Sequence record: LR756502.1
Strand: one strand, 5' to 3'
Length of the DNA stretch: 64,000 nucleotides
Part shown: piece after piece, positions 930 through 54,338 of the stretch
Layout: each line of letters starts with the position of its first letter
How positions within the stretch are numbered: the first letter of the stretch is position 1
Translations under genes and position numbers: made by a program
Notes under the pieces: model-generated
Databases searched by the model: none
Told to the model about the DNA's origin: nothing
The model's input: the letters and a program-made list of their open reading frames with translations, nothing else

Positions 930-1087
930 ATGAGAACAATTAACAAACATAAACATTTTAGTAAATTGAATAAGTGGTTTAGTAACCATCGATTCGAAGC
1001 TAAAGCGTTTTGCTAAATTGTTAATAAACATAAAGGCATAAACTTACTTGAACTCTCGAATTGAAAAATTCGAGAGTTTTTTATTTT
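930..1087 (+). promoter_or_regulatory. Attenuator 1: leader MRTINKHKHFSKLNKWFSNHRFEAKAFC (930-1016) + terminator (1051-1087)
   Basis: His x3, Phe x4, Trp, Lys x5; CGATTCGA (990-997) can pair with terminator arm TCGAATTG (1056-1063); followed by His/Phe/Trp/Lys tRNAs and trpS. Confidence 0.8.
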
Positions 1088-3419: not shown

Positions 3420-3555
3420 ATGAAAACAACTATTAAAAATACAAGTTCACGTAGTCGCTCGAGTAAATCGGGTGAGGTTCGACTGTATTCATAATAGTTA
3501 GTATAAACATATTGTGTAAACCCTCGAACTTAACCGTTTGAGGGTTTTTTGTTTT
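3420..3555 (+). promoter_or_regulatory. Attenuator 2: leader MKTTIKNTSSRSRSSKSGEVRLYS (3420-3494) + terminator (3518-3555)
   Basis: Ser x7, Arg x3; GGTTCGA (3476-3482) pairs with TCGAACT (3524-3530); followed by Arg/Ser tRNAs. Confidence 0.8.
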
Positions 3556-5657: not shown

Positions 5658-5765
5658 ATGAAAACTTTGCACACATATAAAAACGTGATTGACTGGATGT
5701 AAATATCCCGGCTACATAATTATATGTATTCCCAGTCAATAAAAATTGACTGGGATTTTTATTTT
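5658..5765 (+). promoter_or_regulatory. Attenuator 3: leader MKTLHTYKNVIDWM (5658-5702) + terminator (5729-5765)
   Basis: ATTGACTGG (5688-5696) is the exact complement of terminator arm CCAGTCAAT (5732-5740); operon contains RNA ligases and HisRS core. Confidence 0.65.
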
Positions 5766-5987: not shown

Positions 5988-5988
5988 G

Positions 5989-16675: not shown

Positions 16676-16834
16676 CAAGAAGGAAGTATTGAAACCCATT
16701 AAAAAGAGAATATACAGACGGGGATCTTTTGAAATTCAGTACTTCTGAAGAATTATAAAAAGTTTACAAAAAATTTGGTGAGGTTAAAAAGTCACCTTAT
16801 CTTTGTAAAAGAAAATTAGAAATAAAAGATATAT

Positions 16835-16909
16835 TGCGGAGGGGTGAAACGGAATTCATGTAAGTCTCATAAACTTTTTCGATAATTGGTTCGACTCCAA
16901 TCTCCGCTA
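16835..16909 (+). tRNA. tRNA-Met(CAU), initiator-like (1:72 mismatch)
   Basis: AAGT-CTCATAA-ACTT, TGCGGAG/CTCCGCT. Confidence 0.8.
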
Positions 16910-16947
16910 CAAAAGAATAAAAACAAAATATTAATAAATTAGAAATA

Positions 16948-17100
16948 ATGAATAGATTTACTAACATAGAAACAATAGGGTACACAGGGTATGAGGGCGC
17001 GTATAGCGAACTTTTAGTCAGACCTTTGTCTATGTTATAATGTAAAATATTATACAATTTGATAAAATCCAGTCTGATTAATTTCAGACTGGATTTTTTG
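16948..17100 (+). promoter_or_regulatory. Attenuator 4: leader MNRFTNIETIGYTGYEGAYSELLVRPLSML (16948-17040) + terminator (17064-17100)
   Basis: Tyr x3, Glu x3; TAGTCAGAC (17015-17023) pairs with GTCTGATTA (17072-17080); followed by Glu/Tyr tRNAs. Confidence 0.8.
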
Positions 17101-17160: not shown

Positions 17161-17245
17161 GCTACGGTATGCAAATTGGACTAAGCGCCCAGACTTTCAA
17201 TCTGGTCACGAAAGTGGATTGCGGGTTCGAATCCCGTCCGTAGTA
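17161..17245 (+). tRNA. tRNA with Glu(UUC) anticodon, Leu-like body and variable arm
   Basis: CCAGA-CTTTCAA-TCTGG; V-arm CAC-GAAA-GTG. Confidence 0.8.
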
Positions 17246-17259
17246 CAAATATAAAGCAC

Positions 17260-17655: not shown

Positions 17656-17797
17656 ATGAAAAATTTACATAACATATCAGTTGGAGTTATAGCGATAGGC
17701 GCGGGGAGCGTTTGTCTGTGGCTGAACTATGTTTCGTAAATAGTAAAATATTTATCATAAACTAACCCAGTCACAAAATGACTGGGTTTTTTATTTA
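17656..17797 (+). promoter_or_regulatory. Attenuator 5: leader MKNLHNISVGVIAIGAGSVCLWLNYVS (17656-17739) + terminator (17764-17797)
   Basis: Ile ATA x3, Gly x3, Ala x2; TGTGGCTG (17717-17724) pairs with CAGTCACA (17768-17775); followed by Ile(UAU)/Gly/Ala tRNAs. Confidence 0.8.
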
Positions 17798-17966: not shown

Positions 17967-18037
17967 GCAAAATGTAGCTTAGTGATAAAGCACCTCACTT
18001 CCAATGAGGGGATGGAGTTTGATTCTCACATTTTGCT
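17967..18037 (+). tRNA. tRNA-Gly(UCC)
   Basis: CCTCA-CTTCCAA-TGAGG. Confidence 0.8.
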
Positions 18038-18042
18038 CAATA

Positions 18043-18115
18043 GCAGTAGTGGTGTTAATGGTTAGCACAGGAGATTTCCACTCTTCTGGTGTCGGTTCGA
18101 ATCCGGTCTACTGCA
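18043..18115 (+). tRNA. tRNA-Gly(UCC)
   Basis: GGAGA-TTTCCAC-TCTTC. Confidence 0.85.
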
Positions 18116-18177
18116 CAAAAGAAAAAATTGTGGGTGATGGGACTTCAACTATTTTAATATATAAAAATAAAATAGTT

Positions 18178-18804
18178 ATGTATCATACAATTTATAAAAT
18201 AACAAATATACTAAATGATAAAATTTATATAGGCAAACACTCAACAGAAAATTTAGACGATAGTTATATGGGGTCTGGTTCTTATATTAGAAGATCCATA
18301 AAAAAATATGGAGTTGAGAATTTTAAGAAAGAGATTTTGTTTATATTTGATAGCTCAGAAGAGGCATATAAAAAAGAAATAGAAATTGTTAATGAAGACT
18401 TTGTATTAAGAACAGACACTTATAATATTATAACTGGAGGTGATTCATTTGAGGCAATTAACTCTAATGAAGAACTTAGAAAGGAAAAAAATAAAAGGGC
18501 AGCAGTATCAATGAATAGAATTAATTGGACAAATCCTGAGTTTATAAAAAGAAACCATGATAGAATGTCTGAACAAAATAAGAGATTATTTAATGAGGGA
18601 ATACTTAAAGCACCTGATTGGACAGGTAGAAAACACAAGGATGAAACCAAAATTAAACAAAGTATTTCAGCTAAAAAAAGAATTAGAGAGAAAAATAAAC
18701 ATTGTTGGGTATATCATTACGTAGATGGTAATAAAAAAATAAAAATATCCGAAATAGATACATATCTAATCAATGGATGGATAAAGGGAAGAATAATGAA
18801 ATGA
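18178..18804 (+). CDS. GIY-YIG (Seg-like) homing endonuclease inside the tRNA array
   Basis: IYKITN..KIYIGKHST..YMGSG; NUMOD3-like GRKHKDETK; true start ATG 18178. Confidence 0.9.
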   Translation: MYHTIYKITNILNDKIYIGKHSTENLDDSYMGSGSYIRRSIKKYGVENFKKEILFIFDSSEEAYKKEIEIVNEDFVLRTDTYNIITGGDSFEAINSNEELRKEKNKRAAVSMNRINWTNPEFIKRNHDRMSEQNKRLFNEGILKAPDWTGRKHKDETKIKQSISAKKRIREKNKHCWVYHYVDGNKKIKISEIDTYLINGWIKGRIMK

Positions 18805-21385: not shown

Positions 21386-23899
21386 ATGATAGATGAGAAA
21401 ATTTCTAATTTTAAAATTGACACAAAGTTTGTAGATGAGTTCAGTAAAGAGATATATGAGCAAACATACAGATACGGACTAGAAGACATAAATCAAACAC
21501 AATTAAGAGTAGCTAAAGACTTAGCTTCTATCGAAAAAGACCCAGATTATTGGACCCAGGAATTTCTTTGGGCCTTGGAAGATTTCAAATTCTCACCTGG
21601 AGGTCGAATAACATCAAATGCTGGTACTGGATTAAAAGGAACAACCTACATAAACTGCTTTGTTGATGGTTTTATGGGGGAAGATCAAGACTCAATGGAG
21701 GGAATCCTTGATGCTCTTAGAAGACAGGCTCTTATTTTAAAATCAGAAGGTGGTTATGGATTTTGTGCTGATGTGATGAGGCCTAGAGGATCATTTATTA
21801 ATGGCATTGGGAATGAGTCACCAGGATCTGTTAGAATGTTGGATATGTGGGACACTCAATCTGGTGTAATAACAGAGGGAAGTGGTAATAAGACTAAGAA
21901 GGAAAAGGGAAAGATAAAGATACGCAAAGGTGCTCAAATGGTAACAATGTCTTGTTGGCATCCTGATATCGAAGAGTATATAACCGCAAAACAAACACCT
22001 GGCCGCTTAACAAAATTTAATATGTCTGTTCTTATAACTGATGAGTTAATGGATGCTGTTAAAAATAATAAACCATGGGTATTGGAGTTTCCTGACTATG
22101 ACTTACATCCATCAGAGTATAAATCTAACTGGGATGGTAATATTAAAAAATGGAAAGCTCTCGGATATGCAACATCAATATTTAAGACATATGATAATGC
22201 AAATCAGTTATGGGATATAATAATGACATCAACATACAATAGAAATGAACCAGGAGTTCTTTTTGTTGATACGATGAATAGGCTAAACAACCTTTACTAT
22301 ACCGAATATATTACTGCGACAAACCCATGTGGTGAACAAATACTTCCAATTGGTGGGGTTTGCTTACTTGGGTCTATTAACCTTACACAATTTGTTGATT
22401 TTGAAAATAGAAATTGGGATTATGATAAACTAAAGAAGCTTATACCGATAGCTATAAGATTTATGGACAATGTAAATGATAAGACAAATGTGCCTTTGCC
22501 ATCACAGAAGGAATCTCTAGTTAATAAAAGGAGAATTGGTCTTGGTTTACTTGGATATGGGTCTGCTCTAATGATGATGAAGATGAGATATGGATCTAAA
22601 GAGGCTCTTGATCTTACAGAAACACTTATGGAGTTTTTGGCAAACCAGTCCTACCAGTCGTCTGCACTTCTAGCTTCTGAGAAGGGGTCATTTAAACTAT
22701 TTGATAAGGATAAATACCTGGATAGTAAATTTATAGAACAAGCTTTGACCGAAGAAACTAAAAGTATGATTAGAAAGTATGGTCTAAGAAACTCACACTT
22801 ATTATCTATACAACCAACTGGTAATTCATCCGTATTTGCTAATAATGTTAGTGGTGGATTAGAACCTCTATTTATGCCAAAATATATTAGAACTACAATT
22901 ATGCCATATGCTCCTGATGGATTGGATAAACCAAGAAATATTGATTGGGATAATAAAACATTTGAATCCGACTCAATCTGGACCTGGATAAAAGAAGGTG
23001 ATGAGAATTTGATGAGAACTGAGTTTGGTGGATATGTTTGGAAGTTTGATAAATCTAGGGGTTTATTAAGAGAGAATGTTGTTATGGACTATGCTGTTAG
23101 ATTTTTGGAATCAAAGGATCAATGGGATCCAAAGGCTGACTGGGCAGCTACAACAACCGAATTGAGTATTGATGAGCATATTAATACTATGGCAATTATG
23201 TCAAAGTATATTGATTCTGCTATGTCAAAGACTGTTAATTTACCAAACGATTACCCATACGAAGACTTCAAAAAACTATACATCGATATGTATAACACTG
23301 GAACTATAAAGGGTGGCACAACATATAGATCTGGAACAATGACTGTTGTTCTTTCGGAGAAGTCAAGTGATGCTGATGATGTGAAGATAGTTAAGACAAA
23401 TGCTCCAAAGAGACCAAAGTCTTTGAGTTGTGATATTAATCACTTGACCGTACAAGGTGATAGATGGATAGTTATTGTTGGATTACTTGGTAAGGACCCT
23501 TATGAGATATTTGCATTTAGAAAGAAAAACATTAATCTATCTGATAAGATAAAGGATGGTAAGCTAACAAAGGTAAAGAGTGGAAAGTATAACCTTGAGC
23601 TTGATGGGTTTACATTGGAGGATTTGAAGGAACATTTTGAATCTGATGAGCAAGAAGCATTGACAAGAATGATATCAACTTCTCTTAGACACGGTGCTGA
23701 TATTAATTTCATATATGATCAATTGCAAAAGTCAGAAGGAACAATAGTTTCGTTCTCAAAGGCTATATCTAGAACTCTTAAGATATATCTGAAAGAGGGA
23801 TCTGTTGGTTCTTGTGACAACTGTGGTTCACCTGACGGGTTGGTGATGCAAGAAGGATGTTTTAAGTGTAAGGATTGCGGGTACTCAAAATGTTCTTAG
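21386..23899 (+). CDS. nrdJ: Class II (B12-dependent) ribonucleotide reductase
   Basis: PGGRI, INCFV, TNPCGEQ, CLLGSINL, QPTGNSS, SKTVN; C-terminal CxxC..CxxC; no beta subunit nearby. Confidence 0.88.
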   Translation: MIDEKISNFKIDTKFVDEFSKEIYEQTYRYGLEDINQTQLRVAKDLASIEKDPDYWTQEFLWALEDFKFSPGGRITSNAGTGLKGTTYINCFVDGFMGEDQDSMEGILDALRRQALILKSEGGYGFCADVMRPRGSFINGIGNESPGSVRMLDMWDTQSGVITEGSGNKTKKEKGKIKIRKGAQMVTMSCWHPDIEEYITAKQTPGRLTKFNMSVLITDELMDAVKNNKPWVLEFPDYDLHPSEYKSNWDGNIKKWKALGYATSIFKTYDNANQLWDIIMTSTYNRNEPGVLFVDTMNRLNNLYYTEYITATNPCGEQILPIGGVCLLGSINLTQFVDFENRNWDYDKLKKLIPIAIRFMDNVNDKTNVPLPSQKESLVNKRRIGLGLLGYGSALMMMKMRYGSKEALDLTETLMEFLANQSYQSSALLASEKGSFKLFDKDKYLDSKFIEQALTEETKSMIRKYGLRNSHLLSIQPTGNSSVFANNVSGGLEPLFMPKYIRTTIMPYAPDGLDKPRNIDWDNKTFESDSIWTWIKEGDENLMRTEFGGYVWKFDKSRGLLRENVVMDYAVRFLESKDQWDPKADWAATTTELSIDEHINTMAIMSKYIDSAMSKTVNLPNDYPYEDFKKLYIDMYNTGTIKGGTTYRSGTMTVVLSEKSSDADDVKIVKTNAPKRPKSLSCDINHLTVQGDRWIVIVGLLGKDPYEIFAFRKKNINLSDKIKDGKLTKVKSGKYNLELDGFTLEDLKEHFESDEQEALTRMISTSLRHGADINFIYDQLQKSEGTIVSFSKAISRTLKIYLKEGSVGSCDNCGSPDGLVMQEGCFKCKDCGYSKCS

Positions 23900-28583: not shown

Positions 28584-29066
28584 ATGAAAAAACTTAGATT
28601 TATAAAAGAATATCAACAATTCAGAGAAAACTTTGGAGAAGAAGGTATGAATGATGTATTCAATGATGATCAAGTATCTGACGTAGAACAAGGTGAATCA
28701 CCTGAGTCTCAAGAAGAAGTGACTGAATCGGGTTGCCAAGATGCATTATCTGATGCTATTGATAATTTAGACGCTGCATTACAAGGTTGTATGGGTGTTG
28801 AATCAGAAGAATCAGAAGAAGAATATTCCGAGATGGAAAACGAATCTCTTGAAGAAGAAACTGAAACTGAAGAGAATGAATCTCCAGAAGGTCATGATGA
28901 ACGCGAAATGGAAATTTATGGTCGCATGAAGGAACTTTCTGACGAATTAAAAGGATTGATGGCTGAACTAAGAGGTGAAGAATCTCATGAAGAGCATGAA
29001 GAAGGTCAAGGTGAAGTTCAAGAAGAAGGTCAAGATGATGACGAGTTTGAAGATAAAGATGAATAA
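28584..29066 (+). CDS. Extremely Glu-rich protein with N-terminal tag variant
   Basis: Long E-rich low-complexity tracts. Confidence 0.65.
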   Translation: MKKLRFIKEYQQFRENFGEEGMNDVFNDDQVSDVEQGESPESQEEVTESGCQDALSDAIDNLDAALQGCMGVESEESEEEYSEMENESLEEETETEENESPEGHDEREMEIYGRMKELSDELKGLMAELRGEESHEEHEEGQGEVQEEGQDDDEFEDKDE

Positions 29067-29157
29067 TTTTACAAAAATTTGGTAGATATAAAACTTTATC
29101 ATATATTTGTATACAAGATTAAAGAAGAATAACAAAATTTTAATATATAATACTATA

Positions 29158-29327
29158 ATGAAAACAATGAATTTAAATATGAATCTAAACACACTGACAG
29201 TGGTGAATAATACGTTATGTATTAGACCTTGTGAGGGTTTTGATCTATTTAATGATTTGTAGTATGGCATAAACATTAATAAAGGATAATCAAAACCCTC
29301 AGTCAAAAACTGAGGGTTTTTTGTTTT
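29158..29327 (+). promoter_or_regulatory. Attenuator 6: leader MKTMNLNMNLNTLTVVNNTLCIRPCEGFDLFNDL (29158-29262) + terminator (29292-29327)
   Basis: Asn x7, Leu x6, Thr x4, Val x2; TGAGGGTTTTGAT (29232-29244) is the exact complement of ATCAAAACCCTCA (29289-29301). Confidence 0.85.
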
Positions 29328-29344
29328 AAATAAAATTTAATAAA

Positions 29345-29548
29345 ATGGAACCGGAATTAGAAGAATTAATTATAAGAGAAGAAATGATTGAAGAAATGAA
29401 AAAACTTTTTACAAAGGGACAAACAAACCCAAGTGCAATAACCTCTTTGATGTATATGAAAGGATTCAAGGGTAGATTTATGGAGATTAGAAAAATTGCA
29501 GAATACCAGTATAAGGTTTATACTATGGAAATAAAAAGAAAACAGTAA
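29345..29548 (+). CDS. Hypothetical protein, first gene after attenuator 6
   Basis: ORF track. Confidence 0.55.
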   Translation: MEPELEELIIREEMIEEMKKLFTKGQTNPSAITSLMYMKGFKGRFMEIRKIAEYQYKVYTMEIKRKQ

Positions 29549-29554
29549 AAATAC

Positions 29555-29633
29555 GGATAAGTAGCTATTAACTGGATAGAGCTACTCGTTGTTAGCGAGA
29601 GGGTTGTGGGTTCGAATCCTACCTTATCCGCCA
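29555..29633 (+). tRNA. tRNA-Asn(GUU)
   Basis: CTCG-TTGTTAG-CGAG, G73, encoded CCA. Confidence 0.85.
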
Positions 29634-29643
29634 GAAAGAATAA

Positions 29644-29715
29644 GGGGTAATAGCTCAGCGGGAGAGCAAGTGACTGTTAATCACTAGGTCGTAGGTTCAA
29701 TCCCTACTTACCCCT
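29644..29715 (+). tRNA. tRNA-Asn(GUU)
   Basis: AGTGA-CTGTTAA-TCACT. Confidence 0.9.
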
Positions 29716-29724
29716 CAAATAAAA

Positions 29725-29803
29725 CGGTACATACCGAGCCACACTGATAATGTGGATATTCGTAGCGGTGTTGTAAACGTGGGTTCAAATCCCTCTGTAC
29801 CGA
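29725..29803 (+). tRNA. D-armless tRNA-like RNA, Ile(GAU) anticodon
   Basis: CGGTACA/TGTACCG; CCACA-CTGATAA-TGTGG; variable region CGTAGCGGTGTTGTAAAC. Confidence 0.7.
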
Positions 29804-29808
29804 CAAAT

Positions 29809-29887
29809 GCCCTTGTAGTCGAGTCAGTTTTCTAAACTGTTAATCGTAATGGAAAGGAAGATGCAGGTTCGAATCCTGTCTAGGGTA
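29809..29887 (+). tRNA. D-armless tRNA-like RNA, Arg(UCU) anticodon
   Basis: CAGT-TTTCTAA-ACTG; variable region with CGTAATGG; normal T-arm. Confidence 0.6.
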
Positions 29888-29894
29888 CATAAAT

Positions 29895-29977
29895 GCTCCC
29901 GTGGTGGAACGGCAGACACGCCAGATTTAGGATCTGGTATCCGAAAGGATGTGAGAGTTCGAGTCTCTCCGGGAGTA
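29895..29977 (+). tRNA. tRNA-Leu(UAG)
   Basis: CCAGA-TTTAGGA-TCTGG, V-arm. Confidence 0.9.
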
Positions 29978-29985
29978 CAAAATAT

Positions 29986-30025
29986 TACTGAGTTGCCGTA
30001 GTGGCCTAACGGTCCATCAGTAGCA
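29986..30025 (+). pseudogene. tRNA fragment: acceptor stem + D-arm only
   Basis: TACTGA/TCAGTA encloses GCCG-TAGTGGCCTAA-CGGT; no anticodon or T-arm. Confidence 0.5.
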
Positions 30026-30030
30026 AAAAT

Positions 30031-30103
30031 GCCCCTGTAGCTTAATCGGGAAAGCGCTGTTTTTACATGACAGATAGAGTCGGATCGTAACCGGCCAGGG
30101 GTA
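30031..30103 (+). tRNA. tRNA-Val(UAC)
   Basis: CTGTT-TTTACAT-GACAG. Confidence 0.85.
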
Positions 30104-30110
30104 CAAAAAT

Positions 30111-30184
30111 TGTCACTTAGCTCAAATGGTCAGAGCGCGAACCTGATAAGTTCGAGGTACTGGGATCGTTACCCAGAGTGACAA
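30111..30184 (+). tRNA. tRNA-Ile(GAU)
   Basis: CGAAC-CTGATAA-GTTCG. Confidence 0.9.
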
Positions 30185-30191
30185 CATAAAT

Positions 30192-30274
30192 GGTACCGTG
30201 GCCGAGCGGAGTCGTAAGACGAGAGGCAGTGATCTGCAAAATCACTCACACTGGTTCAATCCCAGTCGGTACCT
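30192..30274 (+). tRNA. tRNA-Cys(GCA) with extra hairpin in the D-loop
   Basis: GTGAT-CTGCAAA-ATCAC, U73; GTC-GTAA-GAC inside the D-loop. Confidence 0.8.
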
Positions 30275-30292
30275 CAAGTGTTTAAATAAAAC

Positions 30293-30364
30293 GCTTCTTA
30301 AGCATTAATGGTGATGCACTAGTCTTGTAAACTAGAGAAATCGGATCGTTACCGGTAAGAAGCT
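30293..30364 (+). tRNA. tRNA-Thr(UGU)
   Basis: CTAGT-CTTGTAA-ACTAG. Confidence 0.9.
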
Positions 30365-30370
30365 CAAAAT

Positions 30371-30442
30371 TGGAGATTAGCTTAATGGGAAAGCGTTACC
30401 TTGACATGGTAGAGAGAGTGGGATCGTTACCCACATTTCCAA
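30371..30442 (+). tRNA. tRNA-Val(GAC)
   Basis: TTACC-TTGACAT-GGTAG. Confidence 0.85.
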
Positions 30443-30462
30443 CAAATAATGGATGGTGACTG

Positions 30463-30536
30463 AGAGAGTTACTTCGTGATTGGTACACAATTTGACTCAA
30501 AATCAAACTTACGGGGTTCAAATCCCCACACTCTTT
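30463..30536 (+). pseudogene. Degenerate Leu(CAA) tRNA-like gene, no V-arm
   Basis: TTTGA-CTCAAAA-TCAAA and T-arm present; acceptor and D-arm imperfect. Confidence 0.5.
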
Positions 30537-30557
30537 CGAAACTTTCCTCCATTACTT

Positions 30558-30637
30558 GCCAATGTGGCTCAGCGGCGACAGCACCGCTTTTGTAAAGCGG
30601 AACACAAACAGCGGGGGTTCGAGTCCCTCCATTGGCT
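30558..30637 (+). tRNA. tRNA-Thr(UGU) with 12-nt unpaired variable loop
   Basis: CCGCT-TTTGTAA-AGCGG. Confidence 0.85.
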
Positions 30638-30642
30638 CAAAT

Positions 30643-30715
30643 GCCTTTATGACGTAATTGGTAGTCGTATGCGCCTTAGAAGCGTAGTGTCTCGGTTCGA
30701 GTCCGAGTAGAGGTA
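30643..30715 (+). tRNA. tRNA-Leu(UAG) lacking the variable arm
   Basis: TGCGC-CTTAGAA-GCGTA then only GTGT before the T-arm. Confidence 0.8.
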
Positions 30716-30725
30716 CAAAATTAAT

Positions 30726-30800
30726 GCCCCGGTGACGTAATAGAGTTAGTCGTATCCGGCTTAAAATCGGAGTGCATGGGTTCGAGTCCCATCTGGGGTA
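30726..30800 (+). tRNA. tRNA-Leu(UAA) lacking the variable arm
   Basis: TCCGG-CTTAAAA-TCGGA then only GTGC before the T-arm. Confidence 0.8.
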
Positions 30801-30815
30801 CAAATGGTGTTAATT

Positions 30816-30899
30816 GCATCAGTGGCGGAATGGTATACGCGAGGGTCTTAAAAACCCTTGGTCATTATGATCGTGTGGGTTCGAGTCCCATCTGGTGTA
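30816..30899 (+). tRNA. tRNA-Leu(UAA)
   Basis: AGGGT-CTTAAAA-ACCCT, V-arm. Confidence 0.9.
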
Positions 30900-30959
30900 C
30901 AAAATGATAGACGTTTTGGAAATTACTCTTTTTTGTTTTCCATAATTTATATATAGATT

Positions 30960-31394
30960 ATGGTAAAATATGACAAAGAGGAATTTATAAGTGTTTGTGA
31001 GGACAGTCCTACAATGGCTAGAGCGGCTTCTAAATTAGGTATTCATTTTAATACCTTTAGAAGGATAGCTGTTAAGTTGAATTGTTATAGAACAAATCAG
31101 TCCGGAAAGGGTTTAACTAAAAAGAGCGATAGAGGAACACCTTTGTCAGAAATTCTTGAGGGAAAACATCCACAATTTCAATCATTTAAATTGAAAAATA
31201 AATTGATAAAGGAAGGAATAAAAGAGAATAGATGTGAGGTTTGTAATATAAGTGAATGGAATGGGAAAGTGATAAATTGTGAACTAGACCATATAGATGG
31301 TAATAGCAGAAATCACAGATTGGAAAATCTAAGAATACTGTGTCCAAATTGTCACTCACAAACTGATACATTTAGAGCAAAGAATATAAAATAA
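30960..31394 (+). CDS. HNH endonuclease inside the tRNA array
   Basis: CEVC..ELDHIDGNSRNHRLENLRILCPNCH. Confidence 0.9.
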   Translation: MVKYDKEEFISVCEDSPTMARAASKLGIHFNTFRRIAVKLNCYRTNQSGKGLTKKSDRGTPLSEILEGKHPQFQSFKLKNKLIKEGIKENRCEVCNISEWNGKVINCELDHIDGNSRNHRLENLRILCPNCHSQTDTFRAKNIK

Positions 31395-31610
31395 ATGGAG
31401 TATCTATGTGATAATGCAAGACATCTAGTTTGTAAACCTTATTCAATTGAGAATCTACATAAGATGGCCGAGGAACTAAACATTAAGAGATGTTGGTTTC
31501 ATAAGAATCATTATGATATTCCAAAAAGAAGAATAGATGAAATTACAATTAAGTGTAAACTAATTTCATCTAAAGAGATAGTAGATATTATAAATATTGA
31601 TATAGCTTAA
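31395..31610 (+). CDS. Small conserved protein (DUF4031-like)
   Basis: HLV..SIENLHKMAEEL.IKR.WF..HYDIP. Confidence 0.55.
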   Translation: MEYLCDNARHLVCKPYSIENLHKMAEELNIKRCWFHKNHYDIPKRRIDEITIKCKLISSKEIVDIINIDIA

Positions 31611-31667
31611 TGATAGAGCGGCGGCCTTATATGCCGTTAGTCCAGTGTTTGATTCCTGGTATCGATA
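31596..31667 (+). tRNA. tRNA-Ile(UAU)
   Basis: GCGGC-CTTATAT-GCCGT; overlaps the end of the upstream ORF. Confidence 0.75.
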
Positions 31668-31672
31668 CAAAA

Positions 31673-31745
31673 GCAGTAGTCGTATAAGCGGTTATTACAC
31701 GCCCTTGGTAAGGGTGAGACTCCAGTTCGATTCTGGACTTCTGCT
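31673..31745 (+). tRNA. tRNA-Thr(GGU)
   Basis: CGCCC-TTGGTAA-GGGTG. Confidence 0.9.
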
Positions 31746-31750
31746 CAAAT

Positions 31751-31832
31751 GCACAGATGGCGTAACAGGTAGCCGCGCTGGTCTAAGAAGCCAGTATTGA
31801 GAAATGTAGGGGTTCGATTCCCCTTCTGTGTA
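31751..31832 (+). tRNA. tRNA-Leu(AAG)
   Basis: CTGGT-CTAAGAA-GCCAG, V-arm; A34. Confidence 0.8.
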
Positions 31833-31843
31833 CTAAAATAAAT

Positions 31844-31913
31844 GCCGTGGCTTAGTGGAAAAGATCCAGCTCTCATAAGGCCGGTTAAGTGAGTTCGAAC
31901 CTCATACACGGTA
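31844..31913 (+). tRNA. CAU-anticodon tRNA (Met or lysidine-Ile), partly degenerate
   Basis: CTCATAA loop, T-arm intact, acceptor/D junction short. Confidence 0.55.
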
Positions 31914-31933
31914 CTAAGGCAGGGAAGATACTG

Positions 31934-32016
31934 GCTGGAATGGTGGAATGGTATACACACTGAGCTCAAACCTCAGTATCTAATAGATGATGAGGGTTCG
32001 AGTCCCTCTTTCAGTA
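31934..32016 (+). tRNA. tRNA-Leu(CAA)
   Basis: CTGAG-CTCAAAC-CTCAG, V-arm. Confidence 0.9.
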
Positions 32017-32081
32017 CTAAATATTTGTATATGTTAGAATTAAAAACTAATCCTTATATTTGTAAAATAAAATTTAATAAA

Positions 32082-32426
32082 ATGGAAAAGAACGAAGTAA
32101 AGAAGTATTTATATAGAAACAAAGAGTTGATGGCTAAGTTTAGTCACTATGTCTCAGGTAATTTATACTACACCGTGCAATTAGAAGATGGTGTTTATCA
32201 ATTCCCTATTTCGACAGTCGATAAAGTAAATACTCCACTTTTTAGATTAGATGGAAAGACACAAGCAAGTCCAAGTATCTCTATGTCTTATACAAGAGTA
32301 ATTGAGGAATATTCAACTCTTTCATCTGACTTGGGTACAACCGATTTTAGTGCTGAAATTAAAGCCAGCTTCTTAAATAGGTGGATCGATAAGGCAATTG
32401 ATAAGGGAGAGTTTATCAAGTTATAA
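32082..32426 (+). CDS. Hypothetical protein
   Basis: Start ATG 32082 after TAnnTTTG promoter. Confidence 0.55.
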   Translation: MEKNEVKKYLYRNKELMAKFSHYVSGNLYYTVQLEDGVYQFPISTVDKVNTPLFRLDGKTQASPSISMSYTRVIEEYSTLSSDLGTTDFSAEIKASFLNRWIDKAIDKGEFIKL

Positions 32427-32431
32427 AAAAT

Positions 32432-32504
32432 GACACCGTAGTTAAACTGAACATAACAAATTCCTCCTAAGAATTAGTTCCGGGTTTGAGTCCCAGCGGA
32501 GTCA
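32432..32504 (+). tRNA. tRNA-Arg(CCU)
   Basis: AATTC-CTCCTAA-GAATT. Confidence 0.8.
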
Positions 32505-33070
32505 CAAAATAAATTAGGCAGATTGAAAAATTATGCAAAATGAATCAGTTTTTAATGAACACTTTAATCTTATTTAATATGAGTTATCTTACAAAGCAAG
32601 AGAAACAGATGGTCGAACAAATGAAACAGACCACTAAGAGTGAGTATTATTATGATAATCCTTCTGCTGCTATTGATGATATTGAATATCTTTTAAGTAT
32701 CGTTAGACGACTTGATGATAAACTAACTGACTTAACTGAGGAATTATAATGACAGATTCACAAAAGAAACTAATTGAAGACTATATTGATAAGTATGGTG
32801 GGGTAAATCTTATAGAACTTGAAAAGACCAATATGGTTCAACTTCAACTTGACTTTAATATGGTTAGAATGGAAGGAATATCCTTCTACTGGTTAGAAAA
32901 GTTCTCAAAGGAATTTTTTGAAATCAGTGTTGGTGTAGCTGATAAGACTAATGAAAAGTATGGAGCTTTTATTACAATGTTTACAATTGATATTTATGAT
33001 AGTAATTAAAATTATATTAACCTTTATAGTAATATTCTCCTTATATTTATAGGATTAAAGATAACCCTAT

Positions 33071-36565: not shown

Positions 36566-38038
36566 ATGAATATCGTAACAAGAATAGCGCCTTCACCGAC
36601 AGGATCCTTCGCCCATATTGGGAACGTAAGAACTCTATTGTATAATTACTTTCTAGCTAAGCGTCACGGAGGTAAATTCCTTGTGCGTCTAGAAGATACT
36701 GACCGTGATCGATATACACCTTCGTTCCTTAACTATTTTAAGGACATGTGTGATTGGTTAGGAATAGTTCCTGATGCTTCTTACTGGAGCCCAGATACAT
36801 CTATTGGAACCTTTGTTCAATCAACAACTGACTATTCTACTAAGATTAATTTCTTACTTGATAATGGGTTTGCTTATTATGCTTTCGATTCTAAAGACGA
36901 TTTGGATAAGGCACATAAGTCAATTGCTAATTTCAAATATGATTCCACTACTCGTTTGAGTATGAAGAACTCTCTAACTATGTCTAAGGACGATGTTGCT
37001 AACGCAATTGTAACAACTCCTTATGTTATTCGTTTTATGGTGTCTCCAAATATCGATATAACTGTTAATGATGCAATCCTTGGTGATATCAAAATCAGTT
37101 CAAATACTATCGATGATAAAGTTTTAATGAAGTCCAACGGGGTTCCATCATATACATTGGCTAATGTTTGTGACGATCACGATATGGGGATTACTCACGT
37201 GCTTCGTGGTAACGAGTGGGTACCTTCCACACCTTGTCATATTCTACTTTACAAGGCGTTTGGTTGGGATGTTCCTACATTTGCTCACTTACCATTGATT
37301 ATGAATCCAGATGGTAAAGGCAAACTATCTAAGAGAACTGCTGCTAAGTATGGTATTCCAATTGCCCCATTAGGTTATACTGATGGTGATGGTATCTATG
37401 TAAATGGTTGGAAAGACCTTGGGTACGATCCAAAAGCTTTCATAAACGCTTTATCCTTAATTGGTTGGAATCCTGGACATGATGTTGAAATTATGTCAAT
37501 GGGTGATATGATTAAAAACTTCTCACTTGACCGTGTTCATAAGGCCGGTGCTCGTTTTGATATGGATAAGGCTAAATGGATTAACTCTCAATATATTAAG
37601 AATACACCAAACTCTTGTTTGCTTCCTTATATTGATGTTAAAGATGATAGGTACTCTGATGATAAGTTAGATATGATTATATCTTTAGCTAAAGATAGAT
37701 CTGACTTCAAATACGATTTGAATAAAATTGTAGATTTATTCTTCAATGATCCAATCATTAAAGACTATTCAAAGATTGATGATAACTATACAAGAGTTAT
37801 GTCAACATTCAACTATAAGATTGACTCAGTTGACTTTAGTGATGTTAATTTAATTAAAGATAGTATATCAAAAATCTGTGACGATTTAGGTGTTAAGATG
37901 GGTAAAGTAATGCCTGGATTAAGAATGGCTTTGGTTGGTGGAATTGCTGGTCCTGACTTAATGACAACAATGTTAATTCTTGGTAAAGACCAAGTTAAAG
38001 ATAGAATTATCAAATCTGGTAAAAGAGTAACTGTGTAA
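36566..38038 (+). CDS. gltX: Glutamyl-tRNA synthetase
   Basis: RIAPSPTG..HIGN, RLEDTD, DDHDM.ITHVLRG.EW, KLSKR, anticodon-binding helical domain. Confidence 0.95.
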   Translation: MNIVTRIAPSPTGSFAHIGNVRTLLYNYFLAKRHGGKFLVRLEDTDRDRYTPSFLNYFKDMCDWLGIVPDASYWSPDTSIGTFVQSTTDYSTKINFLLDNGFAYYAFDSKDDLDKAHKSIANFKYDSTTRLSMKNSLTMSKDDVANAIVTTPYVIRFMVSPNIDITVNDAILGDIKISSNTIDDKVLMKSNGVPSYTLANVCDDHDMGITHVLRGNEWVPSTPCHILLYKAFGWDVPTFAHLPLIMNPDGKGKLSKRTAAKYGIPIAPLGYTDGDGIYVNGWKDLGYDPKAFINALSLIGWNPGHDVEIMSMGDMIKNFSLDRVHKAGARFDMDKAKWINSQYIKNTPNSCLLPYIDVKDDRYSDDKLDMIISLAKDRSDFKYDLNKIVDLFFNDPIIKDYSKIDDNYTRVMSTFNYKIDSVDFSDVNLIKDSISKICDDLGVKMGKVMPGLRMALVGGIAGPDLMTTMLILGKDQVKDRIIKSGKRVTV

Positions 38039-46384: not shown

Positions 46385-46410
46385 ATCTACTAATTTTACT
46401 TATATTTAAA

Positions 46411-46564
46411 CCCTCGGATAAAAATTCGAGGGTTTTTGTTTAAAAGAATTAATATATAACCTATGAGACACATGAAAAAATTTAATGCCCTCGGATAAAA
46501 ATTCGAGGGTTTTTGTTTAAAAGAATTAATATATAACCTATGAGACACATGAAAAAATTTAATG
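46411..46564 (+). repeat. Perfect 77-bp tandem duplication (terminator + TAATATATA + MRHMKKFN start)
   Basis: 46411-46487 identical to 46488-46564. Confidence 0.9.
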
Positions 46565-47028
46565 AAAATGAAGTGAACTTTAGTGGGTATGAGCCGACTG
46601 TAGTTTATTATGGTTTTTTTAATGGTGGTGATGGGTCAGTTTTTCTTAGATGGTATTTAGATCCTGATATGGCTTCTGATGAAGAGGAATCACAATCTGA
46701 AGGTTGGGGAGAGGATTGTACTGGATCAGTGGAGACATTTGTTGGATCTGATATACATAAAGATGCCGTTAAGAATGACTTAAAGATTAAGAATGATCCT
46801 AGTAGAGCTATCATTGAAGAGATGTCAAACATTACTGATGTTCAAGAGATTGAAGATTGGGTAGATAAATATGTAGAATCTTCCTATGATAAGAATAAGG
46901 ATGGTGTTAATCAAATAAGAAATAAAAGGATAGAGTCTAAATATAATTTATCTAGATTAATAGATAAAATTAAATCTCCTAGTGTAAAGGGTAACTGGAG
47001 AACAGTAATTAGAAATACAAGTAACTAA
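46540..47028 (+). CDS. N-terminal-tag protein (MRHMKKFNE)
   Basis: First gene of tagged array. Confidence 0.65.
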   Translation: MRHMKKFNENEVNFSGYEPTVVYYGFFNGGDGSVFLRWYLDPDMASDEEESQSEGWGEDCTGSVETFVGSDIHKDAVKNDLKIKNDPSRAIIEEMSNITDVQEIEDWVDKYVESSYDKNKDGVNQIRNKRIESKYNLSRLIDKIKSPSVKGNWRTVIRNTSN

Positions 47029-47460
47029 ATGAAACACTTAAAGAAATATAACGAATCAACAAGCCATCCAGCACCATATACTTGGGATGAGCTTATTTAT
47101 AGAATAGACTCAGGTGAATGTAAATTACCACCAAGTAAATATAGTCCAATGGATGAAGTTAAATCTGATGTAATTGAATCTATTAAGGAATATCTAAAGA
47201 TGAATTCAAAAAGATTTCCGGATATGAATACTGAGCCAATTGAGGATCCAAAAAGAATTATAGATGGTATAGCTGAAGTTGGTGGAAATTTTGTTGCAGT
47301 ATTTGATGATGATTTAGCACCGATTGCACTAATAACTGAATATGATATGATGAACCCTTTCGTGTTTGGTACTGTTGTTATTGTACCAGGTCGTGATTCA
47401 ATTACTTGTTATGATAAATCAACAGGTGAATTTAAAAGAGAACGTAGAAAAAGAGTATAG
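47029..47460 (+). CDS. N-terminal-tag protein (MKHLKKYNES)
   Basis: Shared motif. Confidence 0.65.
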   Translation: MKHLKKYNESTSHPAPYTWDELIYRIDSGECKLPPSKYSPMDEVKSDVIESIKEYLKMNSKRFPDMNTEPIEDPKRIIDGIAEVGGNFVAVFDDDLAPIALITEYDMMNPFVFGTVVIVPGRDSITCYDKSTGEFKRERRKRV

Positions 47461-47467
47461 ATAAATT

Positions 47468-47953
47468 ATGAAACACTTAAAAAAATATAACGAGTCTGTA
47501 TCTGGTTCTAGAGAAGAATTAGTTAGGGATATAAATGCTATGTTTAAGTTTCATAGCAACTATATCTGTGGAATAGAATTCGATCTAAATAATATCGATG
47601 AGATAAATGATGAAATAGATGAGAATTTAATACCATCTAAATTTAGAGATGCTGCTGGATTCACAGCAGAAGAGAACTGTGAGAGAAGAAAGCAAGAAAT
47701 TAAAAGTCTATTCCTTAAATATAAAGGATGGATATTTGATAATAAAGAATCCTTGGGTGATAGTAAACACGATGGTGATTGGCATGAGTTCACGATTGAG
47801 ATAACTGACCCAGAAGGTAATATCTATATTGGTAGAGGTGATACTTGTCCAGCTGAGTCTCCACAAATCAATGAGATATCTGATAATGATGAAGAGAGAG
47901 ATAAAGCATATAAGAAGTATCTTAAGCTAAAAAAGAAATGGAATTTCAACTAA
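47468..47953 (+). CDS. N-terminal-tag protein (MKHLKKYNES)
   Basis: Shared motif. Confidence 0.65.
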   Translation: MKHLKKYNESVSGSREELVRDINAMFKFHSNYICGIEFDLNNIDEINDEIDENLIPSKFRDAAGFTAEENCERRKQEIKSLFLKYKGWIFDNKESLGDSKHDGDWHEFTIEITDPEGNIYIGRGDTCPAESPQINEISDNDEERDKAYKKYLKLKKKWNFN

Positions 47954-47954
47954 T

Positions 47955-48308: not shown

Positions 48309-48310
48309 AT

Positions 48311-48487
48311 ATGAAATACTTAAAGAAAATTAACGAAGGTAATGATACTTACTTTGAGTATGATGTAAATGATACATCTACTTATAAAGGTCGAGATGTT
48401 GGTAAAATGATAAAAGACGTCTTAGATGCACTGAACATTGACTATACTAAGGATGATAATGAAGTCTTATTTTGGGTATCTTGGTAA
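48311..48487 (+). CDS. N-terminal-tag protein (MKYLKKINEG, 58 aa, not in ORF track)
   Basis: Read manually; shared motif. Confidence 0.6.
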   Translation: MKYLKKINEGNDTYFEYDVNDTSTYKGRDVGKMIKDVLDALNIDYTKDDNEVLFWVSW

Positions 48488-48526
48488 AATTGCTTAAATA
48501 TGTAAATCGATAAAAAATAAAATATT

Positions 48527-48874: not shown

Positions 48875-48876
48875 CT

Positions 48877-49957: not shown

Positions 49958-50119
49958 ATGAAAAACTTAATCTTAAATATCGCAATTCAAGTACAACGTC
50001 AAGTTGTTGTCGATCAGGATCAACCGGATACGACTGAGGCTAATTGCGATTTTATAAGAGAGTAAAATAATACTTGAATTATACAAACCCAGTTAGTCTA
50101 TGATTAACTGGGTTTTTTT
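49958..50119 (+). promoter_or_regulatory. Attenuator 7: leader MKNLILNIAIQVQRQVVVDQDQPDTTEANCDL (49958-50056) + terminator (50085-50119)
   Basis: Asp x4, Gln x5, Pro; GGCTAATTG (50038-50046) pairs with CAGTTAGTC (50090-50098); followed by Pro/Asp tRNAs. Confidence 0.75.
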
Positions 50120-50936: not shown

Positions 50937-51052
50937 ATGACAACTTCATTTCAGCAACAACAGCAACAACAAATTAATCGAACAGATTGATGTGGAATGA
51001 TATTGTTTAAATATTACACCCGTTAGTCTGAGGAGATTAACGGGTTTTTTAT
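50937..51052 (+). promoter_or_regulatory. Attenuator 8: poly-Gln leader MTTSFQQQQQQQINRTD (50937-50990) + terminator (51018-51052)
   Basis: 7 consecutive CAG/CAA codons; CAGATTGATG (50983-50992) pairs with CGTTAGTCTG (51021-51030); followed by 4 tRNA-Gln and glnS. Confidence 0.9.
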
Positions 51053-54213: not shown

Positions 54214-54338
54214 ATGAGAAAGATAATTAAATTAAAAGATGATCGTTATTTATGGACTGACTGCCTCGCAGATTAGTGATAGATAACTATTACCTATAAT
54301 CTTCAAACCCAGTCAGAAATGACTGGGTTTTTTATTTT
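54214..54338 (+). promoter_or_regulatory. Attenuator 9: leader MRKIIKLKDDRYLWTDCLAD (54214-54276) + terminator (54305-54338)
   Basis: Asp x4; CTGACTG (54257-54263) pairs with CAGTCAG (54310-54316); directly before aspS. Confidence 0.8.

Follow-up and report, generated by a model that had tools for sequence, protein, structure and literature searches.

Putative leader-peptide attenuators in front of the tRNA arrays of a 642-kb phage

The largest tRNA array in the window analyzed here (64,000 nucleotides of LR756502.1, part of a 642-kb phage genome) raises the question of whether, and how, expression of such an array is controlled. The original prediction was that a leader rich in Asn, Leu, Thr and Val codons, with a perfect 13-nt antiterminator, precedes this array. 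We first evaluated whether these elements are present, then whether they are specific to this locus, and finally whether ribosome-mediated attenuation accounts for them better than other readings do. Our analysis suggests that the phage probably makes a set of tRNAs only when ribosomes run short of them. Whereas leader-peptide attenuation is a known mechanism, our literature searches found no earlier description of tRNA genes controlled this way.

Anatomy of the leader and its tRNA array

The region upstream of the array contains the following features:
29078..29109 (+): promoter-like site of the Bacteroidetes type, with a -33 TTTG (29078-29081), a 20-nt spacer, and a -7 TATATTTG (29102-29109)
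29140..29149 (+): TTAATATATA motif, 8 nt upstream of the leader ATG
29158..29262 (+): leader ORF of 34 codons plus a TAG stop (29260-29262), reading MKTMNLNMNLNTLTVVNNTLCIRPCEGFDLFNDL
29164..29226 (+): sensor segment, codons 3-23 (TMNLNMNLNTLTVVNNTLCIR)
29232..29244 (+): region 2, the upstream strand of the antiterminator (TGAGGGTTTTGAT), inside codons 25-29
29289..29301 (+): region 3, the downstream strand of the antiterminator (ATCAAAACCCTCA)
29292..29327 (+): intrinsic terminator, AAAACCCTCAGT-caaaa-ACTGAGGGTTTT (29292-29320; 12-bp stem, 29292-29303 with 29309-29320), then TTTTTTGTTTT

The pattern TTTG-N17-22-TAnnTTTG occurs 17 times in the window against 3.6 expected, always on the + strand, and four of these sites lie directly upstream of tRNA-array leaders. 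The site is conserved in the relative (locus L001, 5719-5750; L numbers denote loci fetched for comparison), and the host phylum is predicted to be Bacteroidetes (PMC7162821), although promoter function is inferred. The TTAATATATA motif is a general gene-start motif of this phage, with 17 copies in the window against 1.6 expected, many of them 4-25 nt upstream of the start codons of ordinary genes such as those at 28000, 28584 and 53031; the leader ORF therefore carries the same expression signal as real genes. The phage uses the standard code, with long ORFs ending in TAA 40, TGA 13 and TAG 11 times.

The composition of the leader is as originally predicted: Asn 7; Leu 6 (TTA, CTA, CTG, TTA, CTA, TTG); Thr 4; Val 2; Met 3; and Cys 2. 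Codons 3-23 are all decodable by tRNAs of the downstream array, giving 21 consecutive cognate codons where 41% of codons in long ORFs of the window are cognate to this array; the binomial P for 22 of 27 codons (codons 2-28) is 2e-5.

Region 2 is the exact Watson-Crick complement of region 3, and region 3 overlaps the 5′ arm of the terminator, so that the two helices exclude each other. In 20,000 shuffles of the upstream 132 nt the longest complement was 12 nt, reached twice, and in about 20,000 real 132-nt windows from the same sequence it was at most 10 nt. The duplex energy is -21.2 kcal/mol (z = -5.5 against shuffles), and that of the terminator hairpin is -16.4 to -17.0 kcal/mol.

Downstream of the terminator, the array is organized as follows:
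29345..29548 (+): orphan ORF of 67 aa, specific to this phage
29555..30900 (+): tRNA block 1, in order Asn GUU, Asn GUU, Ile GAU-like without a D-arm, Arg UCU-like without a D-arm, Leu UAG, Val UAC, Ile GAU, Cys GCA, Thr UGU, Val GAC, Leu CAA-like, Thr UGU, Leu UAG, Leu UAA, Leu UAA
30960..31610 (+): an HNH-motif endonuclease-like ORF (30960-31394, 144 aa) and a 71-aa ORF (31395-31610)
31596..32017 (+): tRNA block 2, Ile UAU, Thr GGU, Leu AAG, a CAU tRNA (Met or Ile2; 31841-31916), Leu CAA
32082..32505 (+): ORF of 114 aa (32082-32426), conserved inside relatives' arrays, followed by tRNA-Arg CCU (32432-32505)

These assignments combine ARAGORN predictions with Rfam tRNA alignments; Cys GCA (30192-30274) is seen only in the Rfam alignment, and the Leu CAA-like gene of block 1 is a weak second CAA. 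The originally predicted isotypes (Asn, Leu, Thr, Val, Ile, Cys, CAU and Arg) and coordinates are correct. The 67-aa ORF has no family match and no homologue in any locus fetched, and the same 22-nt sequence that precedes its ATG also precedes the ORF at 32082. The HNH ORF has a BLAST match to an annotated phage HNH endonuclease and a homologue inside the L008 array, and the 71-aa ORF is 76% identical to one inside the relative's array; neither has an NCBIfam match.

Conservation and related leaders

We recovered 35 distinct variants of this leader from IMG/VR and metagenomes. The reading frame is kept in all 35, and indels in the sensor part are multiples of 3. All 733 of 733 sensor residues fall within N, L, V, I, T, R, M and C, against 36% in the tail, and these eight isotypes make up 287 of the 290 downstream tRNAs. 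In the antiterminator, 80.6% of cells are paired, against at most 55% when the partner is slid, and three pairs show compensatory changes; covariation is limited to these three pairs because the core is invariant, and 15 of the 35 relatives have an internal C.A mismatch. All terminator pairs are kept, with one compensatory pair (UA in 18 and AU in 17). The first tRNA follows the terminator by 13-32 nt in 32 of 34 loci, which leaves no room for a separate promoter. In this phage alone, a 234-nt stretch containing the orphan ORF separates the two, and a second promoter there cannot be excluded. The upstream genes differ between phages, so the element travels with the array.

The leader is one of at least nine in the window. 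The other eight are:
930..1079 (+): leader MRTINKHKHFSKLNKWFSNHRFEAKAFC (930-1016) and terminator 1050-1079; downstream tRNAs His, Phe, His, Phe, Trp, Lys x3; the homologue in the relative is at L002 7381-7533
3420..3547 (+): leader MKTTIKNTSSRSRSSKSGEVRLYS and terminator 3518-3547; downstream tRNAs Arg ACG, Ser UGA x2, Ser GCU, Ser GGA, Arg UCG
5658..5757 (+): leader MKTLHTYKNVIDWM and terminator 5728-5757; downstream operon of two ORFs with the KxDG ligase motif (6171-6836 and 7718-8431) and a HisRS-like fragment (6826-7458)
16948..17097 (+): leader MNRFTNIETIGYTGYEGAYSELLVRPLSML and terminator 17064-17097; downstream tRNAs Glu, Tyr, Glu, Tyr, Glu
17656..17788 (+): leader MKNLHNISVGVIAIGAGSVCLWLNYVS and terminator 17764-17788; downstream tRNAs Ile UAU, Gly x3, Ala x2
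49958..50115 (+): leader MKNLILNIAIQVQRQVVVDQDQPDTTEANCDFIRE and terminator 50085-50115; downstream tRNAs Pro x2, Asp x3 and others
50937..51047 (+): leader MTTSFQQQQQQQINRTD and terminator 51016-51047; downstream tRNA-Gln x4, then the GlnRS gene (51398-52999; TIGR00440, 618 bits); nine homologous leaders were found
54214..54330 (+): leader MRKIIKLKDDRYLWTDCLAD and terminator 54305-54330; downstream aspartate-tRNA(Asn) ligase gene (54363-55640; NF003483, 469 bits)

All seven tRNA arrays in the window have the same layout of promoter, short ORF and terminator. Each ORF is enriched in the amino acids of its own array, and the true leader-to-array pairing is the single best of 5,040 permutations, both in this phage and independently in a 634-kb relative (LR745206.1). 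The Pro/Asp leader is the weakest match in the window, with 5 of 25 codons (P = 0.25), but is clearer in relatives. Similar leaders precede synthetase genes: QQQQQQQ before tRNA-Gln and GlnRS, DD before AspRS, and, in relatives, IIII before IleRS, LLL before a LeuRS-like gene and VVVV before a ValRS-like gene; NNRNR is found with AsnRS plus an ArgRS-like gene. The GluRS gene, by contrast, has a promoter but no leader.

Across 37 leaders, complementarity between the leader and the terminator 5′ arm has a median of -12.7 kcal/mol (z = -2.6), compared with about -7 kcal/mol (z = +0.1 to +0.2) for 36 control terminators (Mann-Whitney P about 1e-10), and the upstream strand of this pairing ends a median of 8 nt before the end of the stop codon. 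Compensatory changes between orthologous leaders keep the antiterminator: one is seen against the relative in the leader at 3420..3547, and another, CUGACUG:CAGUCAG against CUAACUG:CAGUUAG, in the leader at 54214..54330. For the leader at 5658..5757, the antiterminator duplex is 9-11 bp, with z = -4.2 here and -5.8 in the relative.

A proposed attenuation mechanism

The sequence-level features that define a leader-peptide attenuator are present: a short ORF with the start context of real genes of this phage, a block of codons decoded by the downstream tRNAs, a strong terminator, and a mutually exclusive antiterminator whose upstream strand lies in the 3′ part of the ORF. Based on these observations, we propose that transcription starts around 29078-29109 and that the leader is translated as it is made. 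If any of the cognate aminoacyl-tRNAs (Asn, Leu, Thr, Val, Met, Cys, Ile, Arg) is scarce, the ribosome would stall in the sensor segment, leaving region 2 free to pair with region 3 as it emerges; the terminator cannot form, and RNA polymerase reads through into the tRNA genes. If the tRNAs are plentiful, the ribosome would run on over region 2 to the stop codon, region 3 would pair with region 4, and transcription would end at 29320-29327. Since the product of the operon relieves the stall, this would constitute a negative-feedback loop on codon-specific decoding capacity.

Folding with the ribosome footprint masked agrees with this scheme: the terminator forms with no ribosome, the 2:3 antiterminator forms with a ribosome stalled up to codon 23, and the terminator forms with a ribosome at the stop codon. 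The geometry is, however, less clean than in the trp attenuator. Region 2 ends 16 nt before the stop codon here, and 23-26 nt before it in relatives, such that a ribosome waiting at the stop would cover only the last few bases of region 2, and the off state depends on timing rather than on simple occlusion. Moreover, the 1:2 hairpin predicted for the window sequence is absent from the RNAalifold consensus of the 35 relatives. In the absence of expression or biochemical data, translation of the leader and the response of termination to charged-tRNA levels are inferred, and transcription-translation coupling in the unknown host is assumed; nonetheless, we consider attenuation the best explanation and a likely one.

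Alternative readings

The alternative that survives best, although we regard it as unlikely, is that translation of the leader does control the terminator but reports general translation capacity (ribosome availability, host shut-off, translation inhibitors), so that any slowing of ribosomes would open all arrays together. In its favor, all leaders share one design and an N-terminal pattern, MK(T/N)..N, and equilibrium folding only separates a ribosome far upstream from a ribosome over region 2. It does not explain why each leader is written in the codons of its own array or synthetase, the runs before the matching synthetases, or why every substitution in the 35 variants stays within the isotypes of the array.

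Direct sensing of tRNA by the leader RNA without translation, in the manner of a T-box, would also involve cognate codons and an antiterminator/terminator switch, and T-box elements do control aminoacyl-tRNA synthetase genes in other bacteria. We consider this very unlikely. No T-box or other riboswitch match appears even at E <= 10, the only leader-like hits being sub-threshold Phe_leader and His_leader. The cognate codons are in frame with a conserved ATG and stop, substitutions are synonymous or move to other cognate amino acids, and one leader carries codons for eight isotypes. The antiterminator loop is not conserved, so there is no tRNA-acceptor-binding bulge.

It is similarly improbable that the short ORFs encode small proteins acting in their own right, for example on the translation apparatus, with the terminator simply ending their transcripts and the tRNAs transcribed by leak-through or from unrecognized promoters. 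The peptide of this leader is indeed highly conserved, with 8 distinct sensor peptides among 35 variants. However, different leaders share no sequence apart from the first few residues, their composition tracks the downstream genes, and the peptide tail overlapping region 2 is poorly conserved as protein but conserved as a pairing partner. In addition, the 5-32 nt between terminator and first tRNA in most loci leaves no room for a promoter.

Finally, although AT-rich sequence yields many short ORFs rich in Asn, Leu and Ile and the terminator lies 230 nt downstream of a real gene (28584-29066), a coincidence of that gene's terminator with a chance frame is contradicted by the 13-nt complement, by the promoter motif between the upstream gene and the ORF, by the retention of leader and array in the relative where the upstream gene differs, by the lack of an upstream complement at ordinary gene-end terminators, and by the eight sister elements and the 35 conserved variants, which are distinct sequences from many samples rather than assembly duplicates.

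The Asn/Leu/Thr/Val leader and its alternative structures

The window is identical to positions 372001-436000 of LR756502.1, an uncultured phage genome of 642,428 bp that is one of the four largest complete genomes of Al-Shayeb et al. 2020, assigned there to the Mahaphage clade with a predicted Bacteroidetes host (PMC7162821). The G+C content of the window is 32.7%, and it contains no N. The elements of the leader and of the region that follows it are:

29158-29262, leader ORF, reading MKTMNLNMNLNTLTVVNNTLCIRPCEGFDLFNDL
29232-29244, region 2, the upstream strand of the antiterminator, TGAGGGTTTTGAT
29289-29301, region 3, the exact complement of region 2, ATCAAAACCCTCA, overlapping the 5' arm of the terminator
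29292-29327, intrinsic terminator, AAAACCCTCAGT-caaaa-ACTGAGGGTTTT-TTGTTTT
29345-29548, orphan ORF between the terminator and the first tRNA
29725-29803 and 29809-29887, two tRNA-like genes without a D-arm
30192-30274, tRNA-Cys (GCA)
30960-31394, HNH-motif ORF inside the Asn/Leu array

The original prediction of a leader with seven Asn, six Leu, four Thr, two Val, three Met and two Cys codons, and of a perfect 13-bp antiterminator ahead of the largest tRNA array, is confirmed in full, and its interpretation as an attenuator is supported. None of 20,000 shuffles of the upstream 132 nt, and none of about 20,000 real windows, reached a complement of 13 nt, the maxima being 12 and 10 nt, respectively. 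The array holds Asn, Leu, Thr, Val, Ile, Cys, CAU and Arg tRNAs, as predicted. The tRNA-Cys, which has a 14-nt insertion in the D-loop and is mis-assigned by ARAGORN, and the two tRNA-like genes were visible only in Rfam alignments. Since lax ARAGORN settings gave unreliable tRNA calls, anticodons were read from Rfam alignments and by loop inspection. The two tRNA-like genes have only 4-5 nt where the D-arm should be and a 19-20 nt insertion in the variable region; their anticodon loops read GAU (Ile) and UCU (Arg), their Rfam tRNA scores are 37.7 and 31.9 bits, and relatives have Arg(UCU) and Ile(GAU) genes at the same place.

First, we analyzed the codons of the leader. With wobble rules, codons 3-23 are all decodable by tRNAs of the downstream array, that is 21 in a row, where 41% of codons in long ORFs are decodable by this array. 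In the tail, which encodes region 2, 4 of 11 codons are decodable. The sensor codons end 6 nt before region 2, and region 2 lies within codons 25-29, so that a translating ribosome passes over it. An extension of the leader by TAG recoding, as in Lak phages, was rejected because TAG ends 11 of 64 long ORFs.

Second, we folded the leader with the ribosome footprint masked. Without a ribosome, a 1:2 hairpin and the terminator form; with a ribosome held up to codon 23, the 2:3 antiterminator forms, even at equilibrium; and with a ribosome at the stop codon, the terminator forms. Region 2 nevertheless ends 16 nt before the stop codon, and the 1:2 hairpin predicted in the window is not supported by the consensus of 35 sequences, which leaves the geometry of the switch uncertain.

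Third, we evaluated conservation in 35 distinct variants of this leader, obtained from one scan of IMG/VR and one metagenome scan; a degenerate pattern scan of IMG/VR added no new homologues. The terminator is kept in all variants, with one compensatory pair. In the antiterminator, 80.6% of cells are paired, against at most 55% when the partner is slid; three pairs show compensatory changes, 6 of 500 shuffles reach the covariation score, and fifteen sequences have one internal C.A mismatch. Indels in the sensor segment are multiples of 3. All 733 sensor residues lie in the set N, L, V, I, T, R, M and C, as compared with only 36% of tail residues, and every substitution (M, I and L interchanging; N to V, I or L; T to R) stays inside that set. 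The downstream arrays in 34 loci contain only those eight isotypes (287 of 290 tRNAs) and start 13-32 nt after the terminator in 32 of the loci, which leaves no room for a promoter. This phage alone has a 234-nt insert with the orphan ORF between the terminator and the first tRNA, and the absence of a promoter is therefore not certain for this copy. An exact 22-nt repeat, AAATAAAATTTAATAAAATGGA, at 29328-29349 and 32065-32086 includes the start codons of two unrelated small ORFs inside the array region (0 expected by chance). The gene upstream of the leader differs between phages.

Finally, the leader carries the normal expression signals of the phage. A Bacteroidetes-type -33/-7 promoter pattern, found at 17 sites against 3.6 expected and always on the + strand, precedes four of the array leaders, including this one, where it lies about 50 nt upstream of the ORF; a sigma-70 promoter scan gave no enrichment (27 sites found, 24.8 expected). 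The gene-start motif TTAATATATA, found at 17 sites against 1.6 expected, lies just upstream of leader ATGs and of many ordinary genes, and here is positioned 8 nt upstream of the ORF. The start contexts of leaders and long ORFs are alike: AT-rich, without a Shine-Dalgarno sequence, and with Lys as the commonest second codon.

Leaders at the other tRNA arrays and at synthetase genes

A terminator scan showed that every tRNA array in the window sits directly behind a strong intrinsic terminator, at 1050, 3518, 17064, 17764, 29292, 50085 and 51016, and each terminator is preceded, 19-33 nt upstream, by the stop codon of a short ATG-ORF. The ORFs mirror their arrays.

Leader segments of the other six arrays and the tRNAs encoded downstream
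...KHKHFSKLNKWF...: His, Phe, His, Phe, Trp, Lys x3
...SSRSRSSKS...: Arg, Ser x4, Arg
...ETIGYTGYEGAYSE...: Glu, Tyr, Glu, Tyr, Glu
...VGVIAIGAG...: Ile, Gly x3, Ala x2
...DQDQPD...: Pro, Asp
...QQQQQQQ...: Gln x4

We scored each leader against the isotype set of each array. The true assignment is the single best of all 5,040 permutations, about 5 SD above the mean, with every diagonal cell being the maximum of its row and column, and the same holds independently for the 634-kb relative LR745206.1. The Pro/Asp leader of the window is, however, only weakly enriched at the codon level.

Similar leaders precede several aminoacyl-tRNA synthetase genes. The Gln array is followed directly by GlnRS (618 bits), and the leader MRKIIKLKDDRYLWTDCLAD with a terminator precedes aspartate-tRNA(Asn) ligase (469 bits). 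In relatives, MNFNTIIIIRYSIPWSIPIG precedes IleRS; MKTMTINNRNRLTDII precedes AsnRS plus an ArgRS-like gene; MINNNVNILLLPLT precedes a LeuRS-like gene; and MKHINSNNVVVVNRNPVC precedes a ValRS-like gene. GluRS (36566-38038) has a promoter but no leader, and the device is thus common but not universal. GlnRS homologues in more distant phages (the fetched loci L011 and L013, and the others in the phage collection) have no leader, so the system is specific to this clade. A piecewise scan of the remaining 578 kb of the genome found only two tRNAs and no convincing leader, the candidate MNQIHHHLTY lying antisense within coding-like sequence; the window is therefore the translation island of the phage.

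To evaluate whether these leaders can form an antiterminator, we computed the best duplex between each leader ORF and the 5' arm plus loop of its terminator. An exact-complement search had found only two antiterminators in the other leaders, but allowing G-U pairs with RNAduplex found one for every leader. For 37 leaders from the window and relatives, the median is -12.7 kcal/mol (z = -2.6 against shuffles), whereas for 36 control terminators (gene ends and others) it is about -7 kcal/mol (z = +0.1 to +0.2; Mann-Whitney P about 1e-10). The upstream strand ends a median of 8 nt before the end of the stop codon, and therefore lies in the last codons of the ORF, where a translating ribosome covers it. 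Many pairings need G-U pairs, and so exist only in RNA of the + strand. The terminators of the Gln leaders are too diverged to align in register for column-wise covariation, and per-sequence duplexes were used instead. Orthologous leaders show compensatory changes: AGGUUCGA:UCGAACUU against AGAUUCGA:UCGAAUCU for Arg/Ser, GAUUCGA:UCGAAUU against GUUCGG:CCGAAC for His/Phe/Lys, and CUGACUG:CAGUCAG against CUAACUG:CAGUUAG for AspRS.

Proposed mechanism and relation to known attenuators

The best explanation of these results is ribosome-mediated transcription attenuation with tRNA genes as the output. Translation of the leader, its coupling to transcription and the response to tRNA levels are inferred. 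In this model, a stall on cognate codons leaves region 2 free to pair with region 3, giving readthrough and more of the missing tRNAs, which relieves the stall, while smooth translation carries the ribosome over region 2 so that the terminator forms. The result would be negative feedback on codon-specific decoding capacity.

In mechanism, the element is closest to the leader-peptide attenuators of enterobacterial amino-acid operons, in particular the multivalent ilvGMEDA (Ile/Leu/Val) and thr (Thr/Ile) leaders, and also trp, his, leu and pheA. As in these, a short ORF enriched in regulatory codons is followed by a rho-independent terminator, an upstream segment can pair with the terminator 5' arm, and the position of the ribosome would decide which helix forms; as in ilv and thr, one leader would monitor several amino acids. 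Here, however, the regulated genes are tRNA genes and not biosynthetic enzymes, so that the loop would act on tRNA supply rather than amino-acid supply, the leader covers eight isotypes, and the element is encoded by a phage with a predicted Bacteroidetes host. Furthermore, region 2 lies inside the ORF, upstream of the stop and not downstream of it, there is no conserved 1:2 hairpin, and no sequence homology reaches any Rfam leader threshold: Phe_leader (RF01859) scores 27.2 bits against a gathering score of 55, and His_leader (RF00514) 15.8 against 49. The element resembles these families in shape but is not a member.

The leaders before GlnRS, AspRS, IleRS, AsnRS, the LeuRS-like gene and the ValRS-like gene appear to be of the kind found at pheST of E. 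coli, where the Phe-rich pheM leader peptide controls phenylalanyl-tRNA synthetase by sensing the cognate charged tRNA. In the phage, the same device would also gate the tRNA genes themselves, with tRNA-Gln x4 and GlnRS sitting behind one Q7 leader, and it forms a genome-wide set in a virus. The T-box riboswitches of Firmicutes (RF00230) have the same regulatory logic as proposed here, a terminator/antiterminator switch upstream of aminoacyl-tRNA synthetase genes that reports the state of a specific tRNA, but bind uncharged tRNA directly and need no translation. The phage element has an in-frame ORF, no specifier loop and no T-box sequence; no T-box match was found at the gathering score in the whole window, nor at E <= 10 in 29050-29560, and the antiterminator loop is not conserved among the 35 variants.

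tRNA gene arrays are known from large phages such as T4, and the many tRNAs and synthetases of the present genome were reported with its sequence, in a paper that does not contain the word 'terminator' and describes no regulation of the arrays (PMC7162821). Phage tRNA genes are usually discussed as a fixed supplement that matches codon usage or replaces degraded host tRNAs, and we found no report on how their expression is controlled, nor any description of leader peptides or attenuators in front of tRNA genes, in phages or elsewhere, although the literature searched leaves out most subscription journals and an older report cannot be excluded. The window indicates that a clade of huge phages, comprising two complete genomes of 634-642 kb, at least nine IMG/VR contigs and dozens of metagenome contigs, puts every tRNA array and several aminoacyl-tRNA synthetase genes behind a leader peptide written in the array's own codons. 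If confirmed, the mechanism would be the first case that we could find of tRNA genes regulated by ribosome-mediated attenuation, and would show that a virus measures codon-specific translation capacity inside the infected cell and corrects it by feedback. It would also provide an experimental handle on why phages carry tRNAs (codon supply, host shut-off or counter-defence) and a set of compact, orthogonal sensors of individual aminoacyl-tRNA pools. Classical attenuation, known mainly from Proteobacteria, appears to be used on a large scale in viruses of predicted Bacteroidetes hosts.

A more speculative reading, which we consider possible but unlikely, is that the leaders together form a codon-resolved surveillance network for the decoding capacity of the host, with counter-defence as its main purpose. 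When particular tRNAs are removed by a host anticodon nuclease or another tRNA-depleting immune system, or by the phage's own host shut-off, ribosomes would stall on the matching leader, and only the replacement tRNA array, synthetase or RNA-repair operon that is needed would be switched on. In this respect, the leader MKTLHTYKNVIDWM, with a terminator and a strong antiterminator, precedes an operon (5658-8431 including the leader) with two ORFs carrying the KxDG nucleotidyl-transferase motif (candidate RNA ligases, no family match) and a 210-aa HisRS-like N-terminal fragment, an arrangement that is conserved in LR745206.1 (fetched locus L002, 10086-10180). The leader, which in the relative reads MRALHTYKITIDLG, carries His, Tyr, Lys, Asn and Asp codons; the corresponding tRNAs are probably those typically cut by known anticodon nucleases, which would fit a tRNA-repair operon induced by tRNA cleavage.

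Additional features of the tRNA islands

The attenuators are arranged in series within longer transcription units. At 16774-17097, one promoter motif (16774-16805) is followed by a tRNA with a CAU anticodon (16838-16910) and only then by the Glu/Tyr leader; the Ile/Gly/Ala leader starts 59 nt after the last Glu tRNA, and the Gln leader 35 nt after the last tRNA-like gene of the Pro/Asp array. Homing-endonuclease-like genes lie inside two arrays: a relative of GIY-YIG-type group I intron endonucleases (18004-18804; 38 bits, below cut-off) in the Ile/Gly/Ala array, and the HNH-motif ORF in the Asn/Leu array.

Some copies of tRNA-Lys, tRNA-Glu and tRNA-Gln are 81-89 nt long (1661-1747, 1759-1847, 1849-1930, 17161-17246 and 51131-51215). 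The copies at 1661-1747, 17161-17246 and 51131-51215 have a long variable arm, a 4-5 bp stem capped by GAAA, of a type normally found only in Leu, Ser and Tyr tRNAs of bacteria, and standard-length copies of the same isoacceptors sit beside them in the same arrays. A tRNA-Pro-like gene (50753-50822) has a 6-nt anticodon loop (ATTGGA). A full-length GOLLD RNA (RF02032, 275 bits; 62685-63091) is followed immediately by a tRNA-like gene (63101-63174), for which ARAGORN reports a two-base anticodon ('tt'), and then by a terminator at 63175-63201; a second such tRNA-like gene lies at 62082-62155, and two Bacteroidetes-type promoter motifs lie at 61870 and 61951.

A large paralogous family of small proteins of unknown function (about 60-190 aa), all starting with MKH(L/I)K(K/R)(F/Y/I)(N/D)E, is encoded at 28000, 46540-49860 and 53031-54161, and also in the fetched loci L007 (8815) and L003 (11104), with more than ten copies in tandem between the tRNA arrays. 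A tandem duplication of about 77 nt (46409-46434 / 46487-46510 and 46449-46485 / 46526-46562) copies a terminator, the TTAATATATA motif and the first eight codons (MRHMKKFN) of the gene at 46540, and creates a truncated mini-ORF, MRHMKKFNALG at 46463, which runs into the second terminator and is not a leader. An adenosylcobalamin-dependent ribonucleotide reductase gene (21386-23899; TIGR02504, 436 bits) lies between the tRNA islands.
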